Positions 1,927 through 27,864 of a stretch of 32,000 nt of DNA are shown here, piece by piece. A model generated the notes under the pieces. The model saw only the letters and a list, made by a program, of their open reading frames with translations. It was not told the origin of the DNA and did no database searches. A program made the translations under genes and the position numbers. The stretch comes from Paramicrosporidium saccamoebae KSL3. Taxonomy: Eukaryota; Fungi; Cryptomycota. The stretch is from NCBI GenBank assembly GCA_002794465.1, contig MTSL01000149.1, positions 12,767-44,766 of the forward strand, written 5' to 3'. The first letter of the stretch is position 1. Each line of letters begins with the position of its first letter.

Positions 1927-4438
1927 ATGAGTGAGTCGGACCCTTTTTCCCAGAAATTATCCCGCTCCAAAAAGACGCTTGTCAAGACTGTAAGATTATC
2001 ATTAATTTTGGTAATGGCTAGACTCTGACGACAAGAAAGAATCCCTTAATTATTGACGATGATGAACCTGAGACGATAGCTAAAAAAACCAAGATTGCTA
2101 GCGAGAGTCCGTCACTCAAAGCGAGTTCTAAATCGTCCAAGAAGGCCTCTCCAGTAAAAACGTTGCCTAAGAAAGCTTCACCGATGAAGACTTCTCCGGT
2201 AAAACCTTCACCTAAAAAGGCTTCGCCAAAGAAGATGGAGATTGATGAGCCAGTGGTCGTCGAACCAGCAAAGTCGGGTTTCCGTCATTATATGCAACGA
2301 AAGGCGGCGGGGCCGATTGCACCAGGTTCCAAGGAAATTCCTCAGGGCGCACCCAACTGTTTGGCTGGTCTGACATTTGTATTTACTGGTGAGCTCGATT
2401 CTCTTAGTCGCGAAGATGCACAGGATTTGGTAAAGAGATATGGCGGCAGGATCACTACGGCCCCAAGTGGCAAAACTAGCCATGTCGTGGTGGGACGCGA
2501 GGCGGGAGAATCAAAGTTGGCCAAGATTGCCGCACTCAAACTAAGCACACTGGATGAGGATGGATTGCTCAACCTGATCCGTGCGAGCGCTAGTGTGCCC
2601 TTTACTGATGAACAGATTGTCAAGGCGACTTTTGTGGCCCAACCAAAACCAGTCAAACTTCCACAGGTTGTACAATCAGAGAATACAAAGTATGAAATGT
2701 GGACCACTAAGTATGCTCCGCAAAGTGAAGATGAGCTGATTGGGAATCACTCGCATTATGAAAAGCTTATTCAGTGGCTTGAGTCCTGGTATGTTTGCAA
2801 TCTAGCTAATTAGCGTAGGACTTTTACAGCAGGAGAAAAGGCTGTTTTGATATCCGGTCCGCCTGGGATTGGAAAGACGACGGCTGCACACATGGCGTGC
2901 CGACAATTAAACATGGAATCAGTCGAAATGAATGCCAGCGACACCCGCAGCAAGTCGTCCCTTCACGATCACGTCCGTGACATTATTGATAATCGGACAT
3001 TGACAGGCTTCTCAGACTTTTTCTCAAAGGTATTAGGACGTGGAATGTTTGACAAAGTTATCCAGGAGAATGGACAGGCGGGTGGAAAGCGCAAAGAAAA
3101 ACGACAGGTGCTCATTATGGACGAGGTAGATGGGATGTCATCGGGCGATCGTGGAGGAATGATGGAACTCATCCAGTTGATCAAAAAGTCCAAGGTACGG
3201 CAAAGATGTTGTGTCATGGTTAGATCCCCATTATTTGCATTTGCAACGACAGAAGTAGCCCCAAAGTGCGATCGCTAGCAAATTATTGTCTTGATCTGCG
3301 CTTCCGACGTCCGGATGCTCGATCGGTGCTGCCCCGGGTCATGGCGATTGCAAAGAAGGAAGGATTGGAGTTGGGGACAAATACTGTGGAAGAGTTGGTG
3401 GCCAGCACCCAGGGGGATATTCGTCAAATATTGAATCTATTATCGACCTTTCGCCTTACCATGAAGACTATGGATTATGATCAGAGCAAGTTGCTTGGGG
3501 CAGGTAGTAGAAAGGATCTTGAGCAAGGACCATTTGATGCTGTTCCGGCGCTCCTCGGATCAAGTTATGATCGCATGTCGCTGTCTGACAAGATTGACCA
3601 ATACTTTATAGACAGTTCGTTAGTTCCGTTAATGGTGCAGGAAAACTACACCAAGGCACGCGCAAATAGCAGTCGAACGTTGAATGGAATGGTAGGAGGA
3701 CATTCGTATATCGAGCTGACTAGGGCAGCGGCCGATTCCATTTCAGAGGCCGACTTGGTCGAATCACTAATCCGAGGATCGAACCAGGAATGGTCTCTGT
3801 CTCCCTTTCATGCGGTCATGTCCTGTGTCCGTCCTGCTTACTATTGCCATGGGAGTGTGGGAGGACGGGTCGACTTTGCCTCCTGGCTGGGACAAAATTC
3901 AAAGCAAACTAAGAATTGGCGTCTACTGGGTGATCTAGCCAAACATTCTTACTTCCGCACCGTGACCAACAAGACGGAAATGCGTCTGGTCTACGTCCCA
4001 GTTTTGGCCAAGACGCTCTTGCATCCATTGATCAGTCGGGGTGCGGAGGGAATCGACGAGGTAGTCAATGTAATGGACTCCTACTACTTGTCACGAGAGG
4101 ATTTTGATAGTGTTCTCGAGTTGGTGACGGATGCCAGCTGTAATATGGGTGCTTATGCAAGGATCCCGACTGCAACCAAGACAGCCTTTACCCGAAAATA
4201 CAATCAAGGGGTCCATAAGCTGCCCTACTCGATCGGCGGAGGTGTGGCTTCGGTAAAGAAAATTTCTGAAGTAGTGACGGGTGCTGACGGCGCAGAAGGT
4301 GCCGCTGAAGAAGCCGATGCCAGTCTCATCATGGCAGATAATGGAGAGAGTGATGCCGAAGATATCAGCAAAGACAAGATGATCAAGGCGAAAAAGAGTA
4401 CTGCCGGAAGAGGTCGCGGTCGTGGAAGGGGGAAATAA
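1927..4438 (+). CDS. RFC1: Replication factor C large subunit (BRCT + AAA+)
   Basis: BRCT (NCLAGLTFVFTGELDSLSREDAQDLVKRYGG), Walker A GPPGIGKT, Walker B MDEVDGMS and RFC1 C-terminal domain. Introns 1990-2021 (32 nt), 2789-2818 (30) and 3195-3223 (29) join the ORF pieces in frame (KSK|IPIICICNDR). Possible extra intron 3030-3065. Confidence 0.95.
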
Positions 4439-5314: not shown

Positions 5315-8300
5315 ATGTATCTGTACCATTTAACGGTGCAAACTCCCACACATATCCCACAATCCATTGTGGGCAGTTTCACAGACGACTCGACACAGGA
5401 GCTGGTGGCCATCCGCGGAACCACGTGGATCGAGCTGCTTCGTCTTGACGCGACGACGGGTCGTCTCACAACGGTACATCGACAAAACTGTTTCTGCACA
5501 CTACGGTCCCTCGCTACGCTGCGAATGACTGGAGACAAGAGAGATTATTTGGTGCTGGGCACAGATTCAGGTCGACTGGTGGTATTGGAGTGGAGCGATG
5601 GGTGGCGTACCGTTCATCAGGAGACGTACGGAAGGAGCGGTGTAAGAAGGACGACGGCGGGAGAGCTTGTAGCAAGCGATGTACGGGGAAGAGCAGTAAT
5701 GACAGCGGCAGTGGAACGACAGAAATTAGTGTATCTGATGAACCGCGACCCCAACACGAATCGCTTGACCATATCCTCACCGCTCGAATCGAGTAAAAGC
5801 AATTTGGTTGTATTCTCCTTGACTGCTGTTGATGTCGGCTATGAAAATCCCCTCTTTGCTGCCCTGGAAGTGGACACGACATTAGCTGTGAATGGAGAGG
5901 TGACTGAGGCGGAGCAGTTGGACCGGATAGTGACATTCTACGAAGTGGATCTCGGTCTTAACCATGTGACGCGGAAATGGAGTGAATCAGTAGACAAGAG
6001 CTCAAACCTGGTTTTTGCAGTGCCGGGAGGAGAGGATGGACCCAGTGGAGTATTGGTGTGTCATGCAGGAGGATTGACATGGCATCGGATGGGCTATAAA
6101 TCTGTAACAGCAAAAATTCCTCTAAGACGCGATCCCCTAGTGACTACAGCCAAGCGAGGCGTCATTGTGATCAATGGAGTGGTAGTTAGGATCAAGGATG
6201 GCTTCTTCTTCCTCCTGCAAACCGAAGAGGGGGATTTGTTCCGGGTAGACACTGTCTATGAAAAGGACTCTGTGACTTTACTGAATGTTTCCTATTTCGA
6301 TACTGTTCCGGTAGCGGCCACTATGCAAATATTCCGTTCAGGATTTCTCTTTCTTGGAAGCGAATTTACCTCTCATTGTCTGTATCAGATCCAATCACTG
6401 GGCGAACCAGAGGTTAGGGAAGCTGATAATTTTGTTCCACACAATTTGCAACATTTGTCGCTGGTGGATCGACTGGAGAATTACTCTGAACTGACGGATG
6501 GACGGATGATGAATTTAGGGGGAGAGGAGACTGCGCAAGTGTATTCATTGCAAGGACGGGCACAACATTCCACCTTTAACATAATGCGCCAGGGACTGCA
6601 AGTGACAGAGGTGGCAGCATCTGATCTTCCAATGAAGCCCACCGGTATCTGGACCCTGAAGCAGACCCTCTCGGATGTCCACGATGCATTCATAGTAGTT
6701 TCCTTTGAAAACAGCACTGTGGCACTGCAAATAGGAGAAACAGTGGAGGAGGCCACTGACACGGGACTAATACCCAGTGCATCTTCGGTGGCCGTGGGCC
6801 AACTTTACGATGGCTCAATTGTGCAGATCCATCCAACTGGAGTTCGTCAGATCCGATCTGACCAAAGAATCAATGAATGGAATACCCCCACTGGCGTCAA
6901 CATCCAACATGCGGCCATCAATCAACGACAAGTGGTGGTGGCCATGGACAACAATTCATTAATCTACTTTGAGACGGATCTGAGTGGAATTTTGTTGGAG
7001 AAAAAGTCAACTTTGGATTTACCTGAAGCAGCCATCTCCCTGGCGATAGGACCGGTACCAGAAGGGAGACAACGCTCCCGGTTCCTTGCAATGGGAAGTG
7101 CCGATTTAACGGTAAGAATTCTGTGCTGTGATCCAGACGACTGTCTTGAGCCGCTTAGTCTGCAAGCATTGGCAGCACCGCCAACAGCTCTAATGATCAG
7201 CGAGTCAGGACCAATGTTGCTGGGCGGTTCATTGGTTTTGGATGTGGGATTGGAGAATGGGGTGTATGCACGTCTATCTTTGGATGCCACAAATGGTGCA
7301 TTGACTGATGCGCGCACCCGTTTCCTGGGACCGGCTCCGGTGCGTCTTGCCACGGCTGCCACTGAACTAACCGGGAGGAATGCAATGGTGGCATTCTCTA
7401 CCCGTCCATGGCTGGGATTCAATGCCCATGGTCAATCCAACCTGATTCCCCTCTCATTGCCGCCAATCAATGCGGCAGCTCCCTTTTCCTCGGAACAATG
7501 TCCGGCAGGAATTGTAGTGCTAACGGAAAATGTTTTGCGGATTGTAATGGTGGAGAGTTTGGAGGATCGCTATACGAAGCATTCCATTCCCCTGGAACAC
7601 ACTCCCCGAAAGTTGGCTTTCCATCCGGGGGCCAATCTGTTTGCAGTCATTGAAAGTGACCATCGAGGCCACAGTACCGACCAACGCCAACAGATTGAGC
7701 AGTCCTGGGGATTAGAAAGTGACGGCTCCAATGAGCAGTTGGATCAAAGGTGGACACACTATTCCTTCAAGGGGAAATGGAACTCTTGCGTACGTCTCAT
7801 CTCTCCTGTCAGCGGGACTCTGGCCGCAGTCCATCACTTTGTTAACAACGAGGCAGCTACTGGAGTGGCTTGGGTAACATTCCACGATCGGCTGAATGAA
7901 CTGTATTTGGCTGTGGGTGTAGCCAAGGACATGAGCATTTCCCCCCGATCAGCAGTGTCATCTTCCATTCTGTTGTTTCTGGTGGATCCAACCAATGGGA
8001 CATTGACATTGACCCATAGCACTCCGGTGGATGAGATTCCCTCCTGTCTTTCAGCATTTGGAGGACGATTACTGGCTGGAGTGGGATCGGCGCTGCGCTT
8101 GTACGATATTGGTAAGAAGAGATTACTACGAAAGTGCGAGACGCGTCTGCCTGGCTTTGCCACGTGTTTACAGTCGCAGGGATGGCGGGTGTTTGTGGGT
8201 GACAGTGAGGCATCAGTGCTACTGTACCAATATCAGCCCATTGATAATCGTTTCCAACTCGTTGCTGACGACACCCAACAACGTCCCGTTTCAGCCTTGT

Positions 8301-8842
8301 TGGTGCTGGATTACGACACTGTTGCCATGGCTGATCGATTTGGTACCTTTTGTGTACTACGGCTACCGGCGTCAGTAGCGGAGGATTTGGAGAACGAGGC
8401 AACGGCAGGCGCAGTGGCGGCCAAACGGGAACATTTGTTTGGTGCCCCCTTCAAGTTGGAACGACTTGTCGAATTCCATTTAGGCGATACCATCACATCG
8501 CTCTCCAAGACGTCATTGGTTGCTGGATCCCGAGAATTGCTGGGCTACACGACCATCAGCGGCGCCGTAGGTGTCTTTTTGCCGTTTACATCTCATGACG
8601 AGGCGCTACTCTTCCAGACGCTCGAGATGGCCCTCCGTCAGGAAACGAATATTGTCGGACGAGACCATCTCCTATATCGTTCCTATTATGCGCCTGTCAA
8701 GGCCGTCATGGATGGTGACTTGTGCGAGACGCTTGTCGTATTGCCGGGAGATCGACTGCATTTTGTGGCCGCTGCGGTAGACCGGACACCTGCTGAGCTC
8801 GTCAAAAAGGTGCAGGATTTGCGCACCACTGCCGGCATTTGA
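5315..8842 (+). CDS. SF3B3: U2 snRNP splicing factor 3B subunit 3 (SF3B3/Rse1), intronless, 1175 aa
   Basis: MYLYHLT start, VHQETYGRSGVRR, ISSPLES, LRLYDIGKKRLLRKCE and RSYYAPVKAVMDGDLCE are characteristic of SF3B3/Rse1. Confidence 0.96.
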   Translation: MYLYHLTVQTPTHIPQSIVGSFTDDSTQELVAIRGTTWIELLRLDATTGRLTTVHRQNCFCTLRSLATLRMTGDKRDYLVLGTDSGRLVVLEWSDGWRTVHQETYGRSGVRRTTAGELVASDVRGRAVMTAAVERQKLVYLMNRDPNTNRLTISSPLESSKSNLVVFSLTAVDVGYENPLFAALEVDTTLAVNGEVTEAEQLDRIVTFYEVDLGLNHVTRKWSESVDKSSNLVFAVPGGEDGPSGVLVCHAGGLTWHRMGYKSVTAKIPLRRDPLVTTAKRGVIVINGVVVRIKDGFFFLLQTEEGDLFRVDTVYEKDSVTLLNVSYFDTVPVAATMQIFRSGFLFLGSEFTSHCLYQIQSLGEPEVREADNFVPHNLQHLSLVDRLENYSELTDGRMMNLGGEETAQVYSLQGRAQHSTFNIMRQGLQVTEVAASDLPMKPTGIWTLKQTLSDVHDAFIVVSFENSTVALQIGETVEEATDTGLIPSASSVAVGQLYDGSIVQIHPTGVRQIRSDQRINEWNTPTGVNIQHAAINQRQVVVAMDNNSLIYFETDLSGILLEKKSTLDLPEAAISLAIGPVPEGRQRSRFLAMGSADLTVRILCCDPDDCLEPLSLQALAAPPTALMISESGPMLLGGSLVLDVGLENGVYARLSLDATNGALTDARTRFLGPAPVRLATAATELTGRNAMVAFSTRPWLGFNAHGQSNLIPLSLPPINAAAPFSSEQCPAGIVVLTENVLRIVMVESLEDRYTKHSIPLEHTPRKLAFHPGANLFAVIESDHRGHSTDQRQQIEQSWGLESDGSNEQLDQRWTHYSFKGKWNSCVRLISPVSGTLAAVHHFVNNEAATGVAWVTFHDRLNELYLAVGVAKDMSISPRSAVSSSILLFLVDPTNGTLTLTHSTPVDEIPSCLSAFGGRLLAGVGSALRLYDIGKKRLLRKCETRLPGFATCLQSQGWRVFVGDSEASVLLYQYQPIDNRFQLVADDTQQRPVSALLVLDYDTVAMADRFGTFCVLRLPASVAEDLENEATAGAVAAKREHLFGAPFKLERLVEFHLGDTITSLSKTSLVAGSRELLGYTTISGAVGVFLPFTSHDEALLFQTLEMALRQETNIVGRDHLLYRSYYAPVKAVMDGDLCETLVVLPGDRLHFVAAAVDRTPAELVKKVQDLRTTAGI

Positions 8843-13920: not shown

Positions 13921-13965
13921 ATGGCACTCTGAGGTAAGGGAATGGCTGCTGGTTGTGATGTGTAG
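13921..13965 (+). promoter_or_regulatory. uORF (ATG GCA CTC TGA) followed by a 32-nt 5' leader intron
   Basis: ATG 13921, TGA 13930-13932, consensus donor AG|GTAAGG at 13934, TAG acceptor at 13965. Confidence 0.6.
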
Positions 13966-13988
13966 TGGCCTGTTGTCCAGTTCTTAAC

Positions 13989-15350
13989 ATGTCGTTCCCT
14001 CACTCTCTCCCCGCAAGTCCCGTGGTGCTGGCTACGCCAACGATAGGTGCAGACCTGCTGGCGCCGAGCAGTCCGGTGGGGCCTAATCCTAAAAAGGCCA
14101 GGTTCCTTAAGCGCTTATACGACTTTTTCCACCATATTGGACACCAGCAGAGTCCGAAACGAGAGGAGCCGCTCCCCAGTGGAGACCGCCACGGGCGGCT
14201 GGAAAAGCTCCTTGGCCACTTTCGACAGGGCAGTCAAGGCTCCGTAGTGGAGCTTGGAGTTGTCCCTGCCGATGTAGCCTCCCCACTAGTCTTGGGAGAT
14301 GCTATTGTACCACACCATCCCAGGCTGCATATCCGTCTGATGAGTTTATTGTCTTTTAAGCTCCACCATGAGGAAGAAGGACATGAACGACACAGCCGAA
14401 AATCGTCCCGCCACTCGGACGACGAGGTCGAACTGAGCAATGGCGAGTTTGAATACGTCAAGGAACGTCTGCCAAGCATCACCCATGTTTCAGATTTGAG
14501 CTTTAAGAAAAAGTATCGCTTCCTTGATGGGCGTGTTATTGGAAAGGGCGCGTCTGGTGTGGTGCGCCTTGGATGCTCCATCTGTGATGACTGCAAGCCA
14601 GTGCAGACGCCGTTGGCAGTGAAAGAGTTTCGCAAGAAACGCCGCGACGAGACTACAGACGACTATTTGAGAAAACTTACTAGTGAATACCGCATCGCCT
14701 CCAAGATGAGTCATCAGAATGTTGTCCATACGCTGGATATTGTTCATGATGGCAAACGATGGTATGAGGTGATGGAGTATTGCTCCAAGGGAGATTTGTT
14801 CAGTGTAATCCAGAGCGGTGGATTGGATGATCGTGCCGAGATTGATTGGTGCTTCTATCAGCTTGTTGAGGGTGTCAAGTATCTCCATTCCTTGGGAGTC
14901 GCCCATCGTGATCTAAAGCCTGAAAACTTGTTGATTGACCAGTTTGGATGTCTAAAGATTACCGATTTTGGCGTTTCTGATGTTTTTATCAGTGCTGATC
15001 AGCCAGTGCTATCCCGCGGTGTATGCGGCTCGTCTCCATACATTGCGCCGGAAGAATACCTCGGAGTGCCTTATGATCCACGCAAAGTGGATGTCTGGGC
15101 CATTGGGATTATATACTATGCCATGGTGTTCCATGGAGTGCCTTGGGAGGCGGCGAATAGCAAGGACCCAAACTACTGCCACTATTTAGCGTACGGAAGT
15201 GCCAAGTTTGAGCCCTTTACGCGACTTCCGAGCGGCGCACGCTCGCTGTTGAGAAAGATTCTTGAGCCAGATCCTGAGAAGCGTATCTCTATCGAGGGAA
15301 TTATGGAAGATCCATGGTTCCTTCAGATAGACTGCTTGCCCGTTGCATAG
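13989..15350 (+). CDS. Ser/Thr protein kinase, fungal HAL/NPR/HRK-like family
   Basis: IGKGASGVV, AVKEF, HRDLKPEN, DFG, CGSSPYIAPEE, DPRKVDVWAIGII and PWEAA..KDPNY after a low-complexity His/Ser-rich N-terminus. First in-frame ATG at 13989. Confidence 0.85.
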   Translation: MSFPHSLPASPVVLATPTIGADLLAPSSPVGPNPKKARFLKRLYDFFHHIGHQQSPKREEPLPSGDRHGRLEKLLGHFRQGSQGSVVELGVVPADVASPLVLGDAIVPHHPRLHIRLMSLLSFKLHHEEEGHERHSRKSSRHSDDEVELSNGEFEYVKERLPSITHVSDLSFKKKYRFLDGRVIGKGASGVVRLGCSICDDCKPVQTPLAVKEFRKKRRDETTDDYLRKLTSEYRIASKMSHQNVVHTLDIVHDGKRWYEVMEYCSKGDLFSVIQSGGLDDRAEIDWCFYQLVEGVKYLHSLGVAHRDLKPENLLIDQFGCLKITDFGVSDVFISADQPVLSRGVCGSSPYIAPEEYLGVPYDPRKVDVWAIGIIYYAMVFHGVPWEAANSKDPNYCHYLAYGSAKFEPFTRLPSGARSLLRKILEPDPEKRISIEGIMEDPWFLQIDCLPVA

Positions 15351-15711
15351 TGTTTTTATAGATGTTTCATTATGATTGATATGCTAAGTGTTATTGTCGG
15401 AAGAGTGAAATTATTTCTATTATAGGTCACCATCCCTAGGATCGTGGTGTGGCGTAGAGGTAGAGGATTGGTTGGCTGGGTATTTGGGGATGGTTCTCTA
15501 GTTTGGGGAAGACCTATTTGTGTGATAAATTGGACTGGTTAGCTGGGTAACTAAGGACAGCGAGATGTTTATCCATACTATTCTAAGATTAGCAGTAAAC
15601 AACCCCCCCAATACGCGACAGTGGGATTGCCATCTGGATCTGGGTCAGACTTGCCAATAATGATAAGCGGATACTGTTTGGCGATTATCCTTTAATACTA
15701 CACCATGCCTT

Positions 15712-16440
15712 TTATTGATCTACAGTTGCGGCCTTTGCCCTCTTTCTTCTTCTCCTTTTGGGACCACTTTCAGCTGGGACCACAGGAGCGCACTCAGTCT
15801 TGAGTGACTTTCTAACAGAGAGCGGATTGGGCCCCTTTATCTTGCGTTTCTTGTGCTTAGATTTTACTACCGGCTCTACTGCCTCTCCAAACTTTTGTTT
15901 GATAATCTCCTTTTCTCGGGTTGAGACGTGAAGTTTGGCCTCTTCCCTCCTCCGCAACGTGTCCAATGTCTTTTTACTTGGGGCCTCCAACAATGGAAAG
16001 GTTCTCTCCAAGAACACTAGTGGCACTCCAGCGATCCGTCTAGCCGTATTCTTCAACTCCTCAGCATCAGTGACAACACCGTAATGATGCGGGTTATCTT
16101 CACCTATCAACGCCGCGATGCATTCCTGCACCGGAAGCGGCTCGTCATGTCTACACCGTCGCAACTCGAATCTTCTCGCCACAAAGGGTGCACCACTGAC
16201 GGAAGCATCTTCTGTGCATCTTGACGCCTCTCTAAGAGCGGTCATGGTGCAGGCAGTGACAAGAAGACGCGCAGGTGCTCCAAGGACCACCGGCAGCCGC
16301 TCACGTAGGTCGAATTTGCAGCGGAGAGAGGCGCGACACATTGTATCATCGACCAGGAACTGGTATGGCGCCCGCAGTCCGTATTTCTCATATACTGCGT
16401 GCATAAAGTGTTCGCTGCGTTTGTACTTGCGTGCCTTCAT
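15712..16440 (-). CDS. UTP23: rRNA-processing PIN-domain protein UTP23
   Basis: YGLRAPYQFLVDDT, RFELRRCRH, HYGVVT and basic C-terminal KGPNPLSVRK. Confidence 0.9.
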   Translation of the reverse strand: MKARKYKRSEHFMHAVYEKYGLRAPYQFLVDDTMCRASLRCKFDLRERLPVVLGAPARLLVTACTMTALREASRCTEDASVSGAPFVARRFELRRCRHDEPLPVQECIAALIGEDNPHHYGVVTDAEELKNTARRIAGVPLVFLERTFPLLEAPSKKTLDTLRRREEAKLHVSTREKEIIKQKFGEAVEPVVKSKHKKRKIKGPNPLSVRKSLKTECAPVVPAESGPKRRRRKRAKAATVDQ

Positions 16441-16523
16441 CCCACAAGACGAGTTTCCTGGAAGGGTATAAGGGACGGCCTTTGGAGCCAGGGGTTAATT
16501 TTCTTCTTCGGCCCGGAGCAAGC

Positions 16524-16731
16524 ATGCAGAGGTAAGAAGTGCGGATGGGAGGGCGGTGATGAAACTTTAAAGATAACTTCTTTCCCAGACTGATCGACAA
16601 TGACGAGTCACTCCCTTTATGGGTTACTTGCCAGTAAAACATTTTCTGAGCCTGTCCCATCCATCAATGAAATGTTCTGACTAATTCCTAGAATTCTGCA
16701 AAGTGTACACGAACTGAATAAACCATTTTGA
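16524..16731 (+). ncRNA. Putative non-coding snoRNA host transcript (2 exons, 160-nt intron)
   Basis: Donor AG|GTAAGA at 16532, branch point TTCTGACTAAT 16675-16685, acceptor CCTAG ending 16691, AATAAA 16717-16722. Spliced exons encode only 15 aa (MQRILQSVHELNKPF). True transcript ends are unknown. Confidence 0.6.
16543..16662 (+). ncRNA. Intronic box C/D snoRNA, SNORD12/snR190-like
   Basis: Box C GTGATGA 16556-16562, D' CTGA 16590-16593, C' ATGACGA 16600-16606, D CTGA 16646-16649. Terminal stem GGGC/GCCT plus perfect 8-bp GGATGGGA (16543-50)/TCCCATCC (16655-62). D' guide CTTCTTTCCC is complementary to conserved LSU GGGAAAGAAG. Confidence 0.8.
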
Positions 16732-16790
16732 GACTATCATAGGTGTAAGGCTTAGATTTAGTAGAAGGGTTTGATCAAAAGGGGGGTTGT

Positions 16791-16944
16791 AACAGCCATG
16801 CCCGTTATCTCGAGTTTTGATATTATGTAATATGTCCCATTGTCATATCGGCCCGTTGATATATGGAATACGACCTTTGTCATCTCGGTCAATTGATATT
16901 ATTTAATATGCCCCTTTATCATCTCGGGCCCATTGATATTATAT
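16791..16944. repeat. Degenerate ~38-bp tandem repeat, 4 units
   Basis: Units start at 16791, 16829, 16867 and 16905 and share a TC(A/T)CTCG-like...TTGATAT core, e.g. AATACGACCTTTGTCATCTCGGTCAATTGATATTATTT vs AATATGCCCCTTTATCATCTCGGGCCCATTGATATTATAT. Confidence 0.75.
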
Positions 16945-16962
16945 ACTTCTCACAACCACAAT

Positions 16963-18372
<1,410 letters not shown>

Positions 18373-18861: not shown

Positions 18862-19617
18862 ATGTTGCGTGTTGACGTTGTAGTTGTTACTCTTCATTTG
18901 CTACGAATTGTGGGTACATTGAATGCTCTCTTAGTGATCTACTCCATAGTGGATGACTTTTTCTCTCTGGATTTATTGTCTACGGTTTGGCGCAGAGTGG
19001 TGGCGACAGTCGCAGCGGCCGCCATCTTCAGAATGGCAACAACGCTGAGTCTTGTGCCCAGACTTCACATCGTGTGGGTCTGGGTGATCATCGCCACCGG
19101 TGCCCCCACCTTTCGAGGCGCATCAAAACCTATTACTGCCTTGGCGATGTTTGCGGCGATTATGGTATTCATATGGTTGAACAAACAGGTCAATAAGCAT
19201 CTGTATAACAGGGCTCGAGTGAGGAGAATTTTATCAACTGTTGAATGGTCAAGTCCTATACTGCCACCCACAAGGTACATGCTCGTTGGGTCTCGAATGA
19301 GTTTCTTGGAATTTGTTGTTCCCCTTTGCTCGAGTACCATATTTGCCTCGGCAGGAGCAGGTGACATTGATAGTTGGACTACGGCCTTTCTCATTGGGGT
19401 CGGTATTATAGCCCTAACCATAACCGCTCGCTACCGTGGGTTCATTGCTGCTCTTCTATTCATGTTTGCCGGATGGGTCTCATTAACATTCTGGTGCATT
19501 AAATCTAGCTCAAGCTCTGATGACGATGATTTCGAAATTCTTTTGCTGATCGCCGAAGCATTAATATCACATTTTATGGTGGCATACGATATCGGCATCT
19601 ACTTTGGAATTTATTGA
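18862..19617 (+). CDS. Hypothetical multi-pass membrane protein (251 aa)
   Basis: Intronless ATG-to-TGA ORF filling the gap between genes; about 7-8 hydrophobic segments; no recognised family. Confidence 0.65.
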   Translation: MLRVDVVVVTLHLLRIVGTLNALLVIYSIVDDFFSLDLLSTVWRRVVATVAAAAIFRMATTLSLVPRLHIVWVWVIIATGAPTFRGASKPITALAMFAAIMVFIWLNKQVNKHLYNRARVRRILSTVEWSSPILPPTRYMLVGSRMSFLEFVVPLCSSTIFASAGAGDIDSWTTAFLIGVGIIALTITARYRGFIAALLFMFAGWVSLTFWCIKSSSSSDDDDFEILLLIAEALISHFMVAYDIGIYFGIY

Positions 19618-26539: not shown

Positions 26540-27864
26540 ATGTTAATTATCGTTGGTTTCTATATATGTTATACTCTCGCACTTTCTGCACTCTTTGTGC
26601 TTTGTGCTTTTTGCACTCTTTGCGCTTTTTGCACTTTCTGCACTCTGCGCTTTTGCACTTGTTCTCAATTTTATAGGTTTAACAACATTGGACATTTGTG
26701 TTAACTGGTCATGCGGCATAGTAACAACTGGGCAGTTTTGGTGTGCACATCCACCTTTTGGTTCAACTATCGACATGTCGCCAATGTACTCTCCGTTTAC
26801 CATATTATCAAGCGACTCGGTATTCCTGACGACCATATAATATTGATGCTGGCCGACGACATGGCCTGCAATCCACGCAACCCTATCCCGGGTGCCGTAT
26901 TTAATCATTACAACCATCATCTGAACGTCTATGGCTCTGATGTCGAAGTGGATTATCGTGGCAGTGAGGTTACGGTAGATAGTGTTTTGCGGCTGCTTAC
27001 TAGTATCCCACAAAACATATGGAATGATTTGTAGACCGGCTGCCAGTGGAGACTCCGCAATCAAAGCGGTTGGCAACAGATGAACAGAGCAATGTGCTGA
27101 TTTACATGACGGGACATGGCGGGGATAATTTTCTCAAGTTCCAGGACCAGGAGGAGATTAATGCAAGGGACCTAGCTGATGCCTTTACTCAGATGCACGA
27201 ACGGAGGAGGTATTCTCAGTGTAAATTCCGTATTAACCTTGCCAGGTATAACGAAATCCTACTAATGATCGACACTTGCCAGGCTAGCACTATGCACGAC
27301 CACATTGTGGCCCCCGGAGTCACTGCAATTGCAAGTAGCATCCGTGGCGAGTCCTCCTATTCCGTAACCAAATCCACCTTCTCACAGTTGTAGTATCAAG
27401 TCGACGATGAGCTGGGGGTGGCGGTGCTGGATCGTTTCACATGGGCACTCTTAGAGTTTACCAAAAATATCAACTCGACCTCCACTGCCACTGTGCAAGA
27501 TTTATTCGACTCGCTGGATCCCAAGTTTCTCTCCTCCCATCCTGATCTGAAACAGAGTGATATGGCAACCTCACCTTCCGAAGCACGAATAGTCGATTTC
27601 CTTGGCAACGTGCGGACCGTGGAGACGGATGTCGACCCAGTCTTCTTGCGGGACGGGGTTGAGCTGGAAAAGTTTACTCAGACGCCAAAATTCAAAATTG
27701 TGTTGGATGAGTCTCTGTCTTTGGAACAACAGGTTTTGGGGATTCCATCGAGAGAGTTTTTCCTGTTGAAACCGTCCCAGCCTCTCCTGAGCTCAGTGTT
27801 CCCCATGTTTGTATTTTTGATAATTTCATACTCTTTCTACAAGGCAGTACGTCGGGCACAATAA
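26540..27864 (+). CDS. GPI8: GPI transamidase catalytic subunit Gpi8/PIG-K
   Basis: [19 protein letters not shown], catalytic TGHGG and IDTCQA, C-terminal TM. Introns 27003-27034 (32), 27210-27245 (36) and 27364-27393 (30). 5' end uncertain: ATG 26540 with a 45-nt intron (26677-26721), or ATG 26711 without a signal peptide. Confidence 0.92.
26579..26663 (+). repeat. Imperfect ~9-bp tandem repeat (GCACTYTYT), about 10 units
   Basis: GCACTTTCT GCACTCTTT GTGCTTT GTGCTTTTT GCACTCTTT GCGCTTTTT GCACTTTCT GCACTCT GCGCTTTT GCACTTGTT. Confidence 0.85.

Follow-up and report, generated by a model that had tools for sequence, protein, structure and literature searches.

The stretch of DNA analyzed here, hereafter the window, comprises 32,000 nt of the genome of Paramicrosporidium saccamoebae, a parasite of amoebae (Rozellomycota, Fungi), and all coordinates are window positions. 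The species was recognized from a fragmentary protein entry, PSACC_02154, that matches the Utp23 of the window with 100% identity. On its plus strand, a predicted intron carries the gene for a box C/D small nucleolar RNA (snoRNA), with a divergently oriented UTP23 gene on one side and, further along past the snoRNA host unit, a TIP49/RuvB-like gene on the other. We conclude that this locus very probably encodes the P. saccamoebae orthologue of the family known as snR107 in Schizosaccharomyces pombe, snR190 in Saccharomyces cerevisiae, and SNORD12 in human. snR107, snR190, and SNORD12/B/C are orthologues that have two antisense elements, ASE1 and ASE2, in common (PMC11971394).

Read from 5' to 3', the element consists of box C, ASE1, box D', a short linker, box C', a small hairpin, ASE2, a spacer, and box D; two stems, an inner one of 4 bp and an outer one of 8 bp, enclose it (Table 1). 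An earlier description of this DNA, made from its letters without database searches (the sequence-only reading), had named the four boxes and both stems, and we found all of them where it had placed them. It had let the guide before box D' end in CCCAG; the guide reads CTTCTTTCCCAGA, with one A more (CCCAGA), a difference that leaves the middle C (C16585) in the fifth position upstream of D'. The window contains the composite C/D'/C'/D motif once, compared with 0.007 times per simulated 32-kb sequence, and together with the terminal stem it was found in 0 of 300 simulations. The snR107 and SNORD12 models both align (CUG)AUCGACA with their consensus, and AUCGAC has been described as a conserved k-loop motif (PMC11971394). 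The CCC-UUUAU-GGG hairpin is the counterpart of the stem-loop in the fungal snR107 consensus. The minimum free energy (MFE) of the whole region gave a weak z-score of −1.5, which is uninformative because the guides of C/D snoRNAs must stay single-stranded. We rejected an internal stem that would mask ASE1, as in snR190: the pairing AAAGA/UCUUU appears only in the MFE fold of the window's own sequence, and the spacer is not conserved.

Table 1. Features of the snoRNA locus and of the adjacent UTP23 gene.
Feature	Position	Strand	Remarks
Utp23 (Fcf1/PIN-domain small-subunit processome factor)	15712-16440	−	PF04900; homologues named "U3 small nucleolar RNA-associated protein 23"
Uncertain TATA candidate for the very small host gene	16467-16472	+	TATAAG
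Host exon 1 (predicted)	16473-16531	+	Ends ...ATGCAGAG; 5' end unmapped
Intron with snoRNA (predicted)	16532-16691	+	160 nt; GT 16532-16533 (GTAAGA), AG 16690-16691 (TAG)
Outer stem, 5' arm	16543-16550	+	GGATGGGA; fully paired with 16655-16662 (8 bp)
Inner terminal stem, 5' arm	16551-16554	+	GGGC; 4 bp, one G.U; likely near mature 5' end
Box C	16556-16562	+	GUGAUGA; TGATGA core
ASE1	16577-16589	+	CUUCUUUCCC + AGA; pairs with large-subunit rRNA helix 73 GGGAAAGAAG
Box D'	16590-16593	+	CUGA; canonical
D'-C' linker (k-loop)	16594-16599	+	UCGACA; 6 nt; family signature AUCGAC
Box C'	16600-16606	+	AUGACGA; same UGACGA as S. pombe snR107
Small hairpin	16613-16623	+	CCC-UUUAU-GGG; just upstream of ASE2
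ASE2	16624-16636	+	UUACUUGCCAGUA (TTACTTGCCAGTA as DNA); pairs with large-subunit rRNA domain I
Spacer, ASE2 to box D	16637-16645	+	9 nt
Box D	16646-16649	+	CUGA
Inner terminal stem, 3' arm	16650-16653	+	GCCU; likely near mature 3' end
One-base bulge	16654	+	G16654; between inner and outer stems
Outer stem, 3' arm	16655-16662	+	TCCCATCC (RNA UCCCAUCC); pairs with 16543-16550
Branch-like motif	16680-16685	+	ACTAAT; intron 3' end reads ACTAAT-TCCTAG
Host exon 2 (predicted)	16692-16740	+	AATAAA 16717-16722; 3' end unmapped

The family was identified with covariance models. The best Rfam match of the locus was fungal snR107 (RF04328; 33.4 bits, E = 1.3e-4 in the local search), which aligned over the full length of the model, including the columns of both antisense elements, the AUCGAC linker, and C'. 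SNORD12 (RF00581) followed with 24.9 bits, and snR107 was again the top match when the whole window was searched (E = 0.01). The syntenic orthologue in one related locus (L010) scored 47.2 bits, above the RF04328 cut-off of 44; four relatives besides L010 scored 34‒41 bits, with L009, L003, and L006 at 40‒41, and the copy in L009 also matched snR190 (RF01249). These matches bear out the homology to SNORD12/snR190 that had been proposed from the sequence. Judged by Rfam models, that homology held as to family, with snR107 and SNORD12 on top, and fell short as to score, both matches lying under the gathering thresholds. A model built from eight relatives, with the window and its near-twin L001 left out, located the window copy at 16544-16661 with 105.1 bits (E = 9.5e-24) as a single copy. 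The same model gave marginal matches at 19511-19577 and 2013-2118 on the plus strand (13‒14 bits, E ∼0.3), with no sign of a second copy.

Relatives were found by tracing Utp23 homologues (37‒87% identity) to their contigs, which gave 12 distinct lineages, the window counted. In every case, the gap beside Utp23 contained a snoRNA homologue, on the strand opposite Utp23. In all 12 lineages, the TGATGA of box C, CTTCTTTCCCAG in ASE1, the linker TCG, TTACTTGCCAGTA in ASE2, and box D were invariant. The spacer sequences differed among lineages, and the spacer between ASE2 and box D kept a length of 7‒9 nt. Toward its 5' side, ASE1 extends to 12 pairs (GUCUUCUUUCCC) in L006, L134, L135, and L137 and to 10‒11 pairs in the other eight lineages. 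The conservation of the boxes that the sequence-only reading had expected is thus complete for C and D and does not extend to D' and C', which vary. Drifted D' and/or C' boxes next to identical antisense elements were seen in L009 (627-715), L010 (179-267), L012 (2652-2761), and L133 (1862-1982), all on the minus strand; these lineages may have lost methylation and kept rRNA binding.

The paired parts covary among the lineages. For the terminal 4-bp stem, 95.8% of the cells in the 12-sequence alignment were paired, with two-sided changes at all four pairs, compared with 17‒42% in slid controls. The extended flank duplexes are lineage-specific, with a mean of −27.4 kcal/mol for cognate and −15.3 kcal/mol for non-cognate arms. 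The hairpin before ASE2 covaries as well, appearing as CCC/GGG, CCUUC/GGAGG, CCUCC/GGAGG, or CCUCCC/GGGAGG. Compared with the closest relative, L001, the snoRNA with its stems is 98.3% identical and the Utp23 coding sequence (CDS) 85.2%.

Complementarity to rRNA was assessed against canonical eukaryotic large-subunit (LSU) rRNA, collected in one metagenome scan with the predicted domain-I target TACTGGCRAGNNACCGATAG, which returned >120 contigs; none of these came from samples with rozellid loci, and none was assignable to Rozellomycota. Four LSU contigs checked with Rfam were complete eukaryotic ribosomal DNA (rDNA) units. Helix 73, at the root of domain V and adjoining the peptidyl-transferase center, reads GCGGGGAAAGAAG (strand AAUCAGCGGGGAAAGAAGACCC) in all six eukaryotic LSU loci that reach it, and in each of the six it is the best sense-strand Watson‒Crick match to ASE1. 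Guide positions 4‒13 form 10 contiguous pairs with GGGAAAGAAG, with a predicted duplex energy of −16.7 kcal/mol. In this register, U7‒U9 pair with AAA, C6 with G2396, C5 with G2395, C4 with G2394, and G2 with C2392 (yeast numbering), so that the equivalent of yeast G2395 faces C16585, the base in fifth place before D', and the D' ruler points at that residue. Yeast C2392 directly precedes GGGG, and residue 2395 is a G (PMC8536666); G2395 is therefore the third G, which supports the target position given by the sequence-only reading.

The target of ASE2 lies in LSU domain I, where UACUGGCGAG (∼nt 324‒333) is followed by GACC (overall ∼nt 324‒337). The motif was present at ∼nt 324‒344 of the LSU in >100 LSU rDNA contigs, the dominant sequence being GCUAAAUACUGGCGAGAGACCGAUAGC, which starts at LSU nt 324‒344. 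This site was the best ASE2 match in the loci tested, which had been selected by that pattern. The duplex comprises 10 pairs, one mismatch, and then GGGU with GACC, at a predicted −22.2 kcal/mol. In three rDNA units, CUCUCGC of 5.8S rRNA pairs with GCGAGAG of the LSU, and this strand overlaps the ASE2 target, as the placeholder model would have it (PMC8536666). The 7‒9 nt between ASE2 and box D put ASE2 outside the fifth-base methylation ruler in all lineages, which fits the lack of methylation at residues 333‒343 in S. pombe. The sequence-only reading was thus right that a second, non-methylating antisense element exists; its position is best given as 16624-16636 rather than 16621-16632, and its target is domain I rather than the extreme LSU 5' end.

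A longer pairing was also considered. The 24-mer CCCTTTATGGGTTACTTGCCAGTA forms 19 of 24 possible pairs at the domain-I site. Its CCCUUUAU part was discarded as an rRNA-pairing segment: it is replaced in L134, L135, and L137 by other sequences that keep the hairpin, and a loop base is changed in L012. Of this segment, GGGU alone may add the four pairs with GACC, and the CCC...GGG upstream of ASE2 is mainly a covarying hairpin. A domain-I variant, UACUGGCAAGUGACC (L034, L035, L051, and L059), was set aside, as these contigs look prokaryote-like. The LSU of the four reads ACUAAAUACUGGCAAGUGACCGAUAGUGAAC, one of the contigs is 356 kb long, and the 15 contiguous pairs with ASE2 that would result are probably a coincidence.

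The splice signals of the 160-nt GT...AG intron that had been proposed around the snoRNA are present as described. A rough scan found four other frame-joining GT...AG introns in the window, at 2789-2818 (30 nt), 3195-3223 (29 nt), and 27364-27393 (30 nt) on the plus strand and at 11720-11687 (34 nt) on the minus strand, with 5' ends reading GTATGT, GTACGG, or GTAACC. Their lengths of 29‒34 nt agree, as far as a rough check goes, with the ∼28‒36 nt that the sequence-only reading had given for the other introns. All 12 lineages have a GT motif upstream of the snoRNA, near consensus in 10 of them (GTAAG, GTAAA, GTACGT, or GTAAGT, 24‒56 nt before box C in those measured). In L002 and L003, the sole such motif is GTATGG/GTATAC, ∼100 nt upstream of the snoRNA, a weak 5' splice-site candidate. 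Wherever the 3' side was inspected, a branch-like CTAAC, CTAAT, or CTAAA followed by YAG lies downstream of the snoRNA, and AATAAA occurs within tens of bases after the 3' splice site in all seven relatives examined (L006, L009, L010, L012, L134, L135, and L137).

No more than 91 nt separate the start of the host unit from the start codon of the divergent Utp23 (16440). The interval that contains exon 1 (16441-16532; exon 1 and intergenic sequence) is 88% identical to L001, and exon 2 with downstream sequence (16692-16790) is ∼50% identical; in the 3' part of the intron, the window and L001 agree at every base of the branch point and 3' splice site and have diverged otherwise. The sole reading frame across the predicted splice junction has 15 codons. 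With so short a frame and an unconserved exon 2, the host gene is best read as a very small, apparently non-coding delivery vehicle for the snoRNA, its splicing being predicted from these signals. TATAAG is a weak candidate for a promoter element, because L001 lacks it; L135 and L137 have clear TATAAAA boxes 45‒60 nt upstream of the 5' splice site. A tandem repeat (16817-16942; 37-nt unit, 3.3 copies, 77% matches) separates the 3' end of the TIP49-like gene from the host gene; it is missing from the aligned part of L001.

The snoRNA and UTP23 stand head to head in all relatives, at Utp23 identities of only 37‒87%, and the linkage persists in lineages whose Utp23 is ∼40% identical. On the longer contigs, several of the most distant lineages included, the gene order is PI3K or UDP-glucose dehydrogenase, TIP49, the gap, Utp23, a protein kinase, and a DEAD_2 helicase. 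The order TIP49‒snoRNA‒Utp23‒protein kinase‒DEAD_2 (window ∼13965-18327) is kept in the environmental relatives L002, L003, L006, L134, L135, and L137, in which Utp23 is 37‒59% identical. This microsynteny is unusually stable for eukaryotes so divergent.

Among the known systems, S. pombe snR107 is the closest. In that species, ASE1 guides the methylation at Gm2483, and ASE2, which guides none, is required for 60S biogenesis and targets 25S residues 333‒343 of domain I; the residues corresponding to Gm2483 are G2395 in budding yeast and G3878 in human (PMC11971394). The snR107 model is the best Rfam match of the window copy, over its full length. The two RNAs have in common the C' sequence UGACGA, the k-loop linker AUCGAC, a stem-loop that precedes ASE2 on the 3' side of C', and an ASE1 directed at the same helix-73 guanosine, and they are similar in size (107 nt in snR107, ∼103 nt predicted here). 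The ASE2 of snR107, ACUUGCCAGUA, targets domain I (nt 333‒343) without methylation, and the window ASE2 likewise faces domain I. snR107 is intronic in a non-coding host, the long non-coding RNA (lncRNA) mamRNA (PMC11971394), and the window copy appears to be intronic in a non-coding host as well. The S. pombe system also has a Mmi1/Mei2 scaffolding role. The differences lie in D' (CCUA in snR107, CUGA here), in the guide mismatch (apparently at position 6 in the fungal snR107 consensus, at position 3 here), and in the host, which here would be a minimal two-exon transcript divergent from UTP23, with no U14 downstream, unlike in S. pombe.

S. cerevisiae snR190 (RF01249) likewise has two antisense elements, box A for helix 73 with G2395 and box B for domain I (PMC8536666, PMC11879421). 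It does not methylate; as a placeholder it occupies helix 73 and, in domain I, the strand that is later taken by 5.8S rRNA, and Dbp7 releases it (PMC8536666). Such a placeholder or chaperone role in early pre-60S particles is proposed for the window copy by analogy. snR190 is ∼190 nt long and is cut by Rnt1 from a dicistronic snR190-U14 precursor, whereas the window copy is apparently intronic; its C' and D' are defective, whereas those of the window copy are good; and the box B of snR190 is perfectly complementary over 15 nt, compared with the 10 pairs, one mismatch, and 4 pairs of the window ASE2 with the canonical target. Human SNORD12/12B/12C (RF00581), the second-best Rfam match, shares with the window copy the ASE1 register (28S Gm3878, the third G of GGGG) and the AUCGAC linker. 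It lies in introns of the lncRNA ZFAS1, and the window copy likewise appears to be intronic in a non-coding host. The human family comprises three paralogues in consecutive introns, compared with a single copy in the window, and its members have a short ASE2 (PMC11971394), whereas the ASE2 found here is long and invariant.

From expression and splicing through particle assembly to methylation, we propose the following course. The very small host gene would be transcribed divergently from UTP23, and its single 160-nt intron would be spliced out. The long flank duplex would bring boxes C and D together; Snu13, Nop56, Nop58, and fibrillarin would assemble with the RNA into a small nucleolar ribonucleoprotein (snoRNP), and exonucleases would then trim the RNA to ∼103 nt (∼16551-16653). 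The snoRNP would bind early pre-60S rRNA at two distant sites. At one, the 5' strand of helix 73 would be bound by ASE1 over 10 bp, which would bring the equivalent of yeast G2395 to the D'-methylated position. At the other, ASE2 would cover part of the domain-I strand (∼nt 324‒337) that later pairs with 5.8S rRNA; 9 nt away from box D, it would serve as a placeholder rather than guide methylation.

Several observations weigh against this interpretation. At gathering thresholds, Rfam reported nothing in the window: the copy scored 33.4 bits against a curated threshold of 44 for RF04328 and 24.9 against 43 for RF00581. U14/SNORD14, the neighbor in both yeasts, was not found in the window (E up to 0.5) or in seven related loci (E up to 1); U14 synteny is not universal and is missing in human. 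The rRNA complementarity was assessed on canonical eukaryotic LSU from metagenomes, as a stand-in for the LSU of P. saccamoebae. Against this canonical target, A3 of the guide faces G2393 as a mismatch, leaving the 10 contiguous pairs, and this A at guide position 3 is invariant in 12/12 lineages. The fungal snR107 consensus in Rfam apparently has a single guide mismatch too, at position 6, and since snR107 still methylates in S. pombe, the position-3 mismatch alone is no argument against activity. A compensatory change in the native LSU (CUGGGAAAG), proposed earlier, is unlikely, because helix 73 reads GCGGGGAAAGAAG in six of six loci and the snR107 consensus, too, apparently has one mismatch. 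Finally, D' (CCGA, AUGA) and C' (AUGAUUA/AUGAUUCGA) are degenerate in some relatives, which fits a methylation-inactive chaperone as in budding yeast.

This last point bears on what the RNA does. There is an appreciable chance, if one well short of even, that it is a pure assembly chaperone like snR190, with ASE1 binding helix 73 without 2'-O-methylation of the G2395 equivalent. The invariant A:G mismatch at guide position 3 and the decay of D' and C' in several relatives beside invariant antisense elements speak for it, as does yeast snR190, which has the same layout and functions without G2395 methylation (PMC8536666). However, the window D' is a canonical CUGA and its C' reads UGACGA as in S. 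pombe snR107, which methylates Gm2483 despite a poorer D' (CCUA; PMC11971394) and, by the Rfam fungal consensus, an apparent position-6 mismatch; human SNORD12C methylates as well (PMC11971394). Because D' and C' drift in relatives while both antisense elements are kept, the alignment suggests that rRNA binding, more than methylation, is the constrained function.

The route of production could also differ from the intronic one, with an independent or longer precursor processed by RNase III-type cleavage of the flank stem, as Rnt1 acts on snR190-U14 in budding yeast. Every lineage has an extended flank duplex of at least 8‒10 bp, and the sole upstream GT motif of L002 and L003, ∼100 nt away, overlaps GGGTATA, a possible promoter element. 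We nevertheless regard this route as quite improbable, given the splice-like GT motif upstream in 10/12 lineages, the branch-like motif and YAG downstream where inspected, the AATAAA in seven, and the fact that L001 and the window have kept the same branch point and 3' splice site amid diverged sequence; moreover, the S. pombe and human orthologues, snR107 and SNORD12, lie in introns (PMC11971394). A chance constellation of motifs, or a decaying and functionless pseudogene, would be consistent with the scores under the Rfam gathering thresholds and the MFE z-score of only −1.5. Its probability is negligible: the 98.3% identity to L001 (85% for the neighboring CDS), the invariance of both antisense elements in 12 lineages together with covarying stems, the relatives-only model (E ∼1e-23), and the absence of motif plus stem from 300 simulated windows all oppose it, and conservation and covariation effectively refute it.

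A more speculative extension concerns the genomic setting and the invariant mismatch. The snoRNA and UTP23 could form an old, co-regulated ribosome-biogenesis pair with a shared bidirectional promoter of ∼90 bp, and the invariant A opposite G2393 could be non-neutral, either as a weak point that tunes the release of the snoRNA from helix 73 or as a match to a changed helix-73 base of the clade. We consider this combination unlikely. If true, the host gene would have been reduced to a bare delivery vehicle. In yeast, weakening the snR190‒helix 73 duplex bypasses the Dbp7 helicase.

The snoRNA is a previously unannotated addition to a described family. In the library searched, we found no paper describing snoRNAs in Rozellomycota or in the P. 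saccamoebae genome, and default Rfam gathering thresholds miss the copy that is now added to this genome. The locus extends the two-site snR190/snR107 design, a helix-73 guide plus a domain-I placeholder, to Rozellomycota, the lineage next to microsporidia. Within the clade, constraint is strongest on the two antisense elements, and D' and C' are free to drift, which supports the view that rRNA tethering or chaperoning, more than methylation, is the core function of the family. The 12-sequence alignment could lower the detection limit of RF04328 for early-diverging fungi. What goes beyond routine annotation is modest, namely the conserved head-to-head linkage to UTP23 and the invariant A opposite G2393; the understanding of how snR107/snR190/SNORD12 works is unchanged by the finding.

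Elsewhere in the window, a weak match to plant snoR41 (RF00205) at 6932-7034 on the plus strand (31 bits against a cut-off of 40, E = 0.083) is probably spurious, because it lies inside a long open reading frame (5315-8842) and has no canonical box C. The Utp23 reading frame of the window is uninterrupted over 242 amino acids, and an exact look-up of this full sequence gave no match. The deposited PSACC_02154 has 138 amino acids and is 100% identical over half of the frame, so that this public gene model looks truncated.

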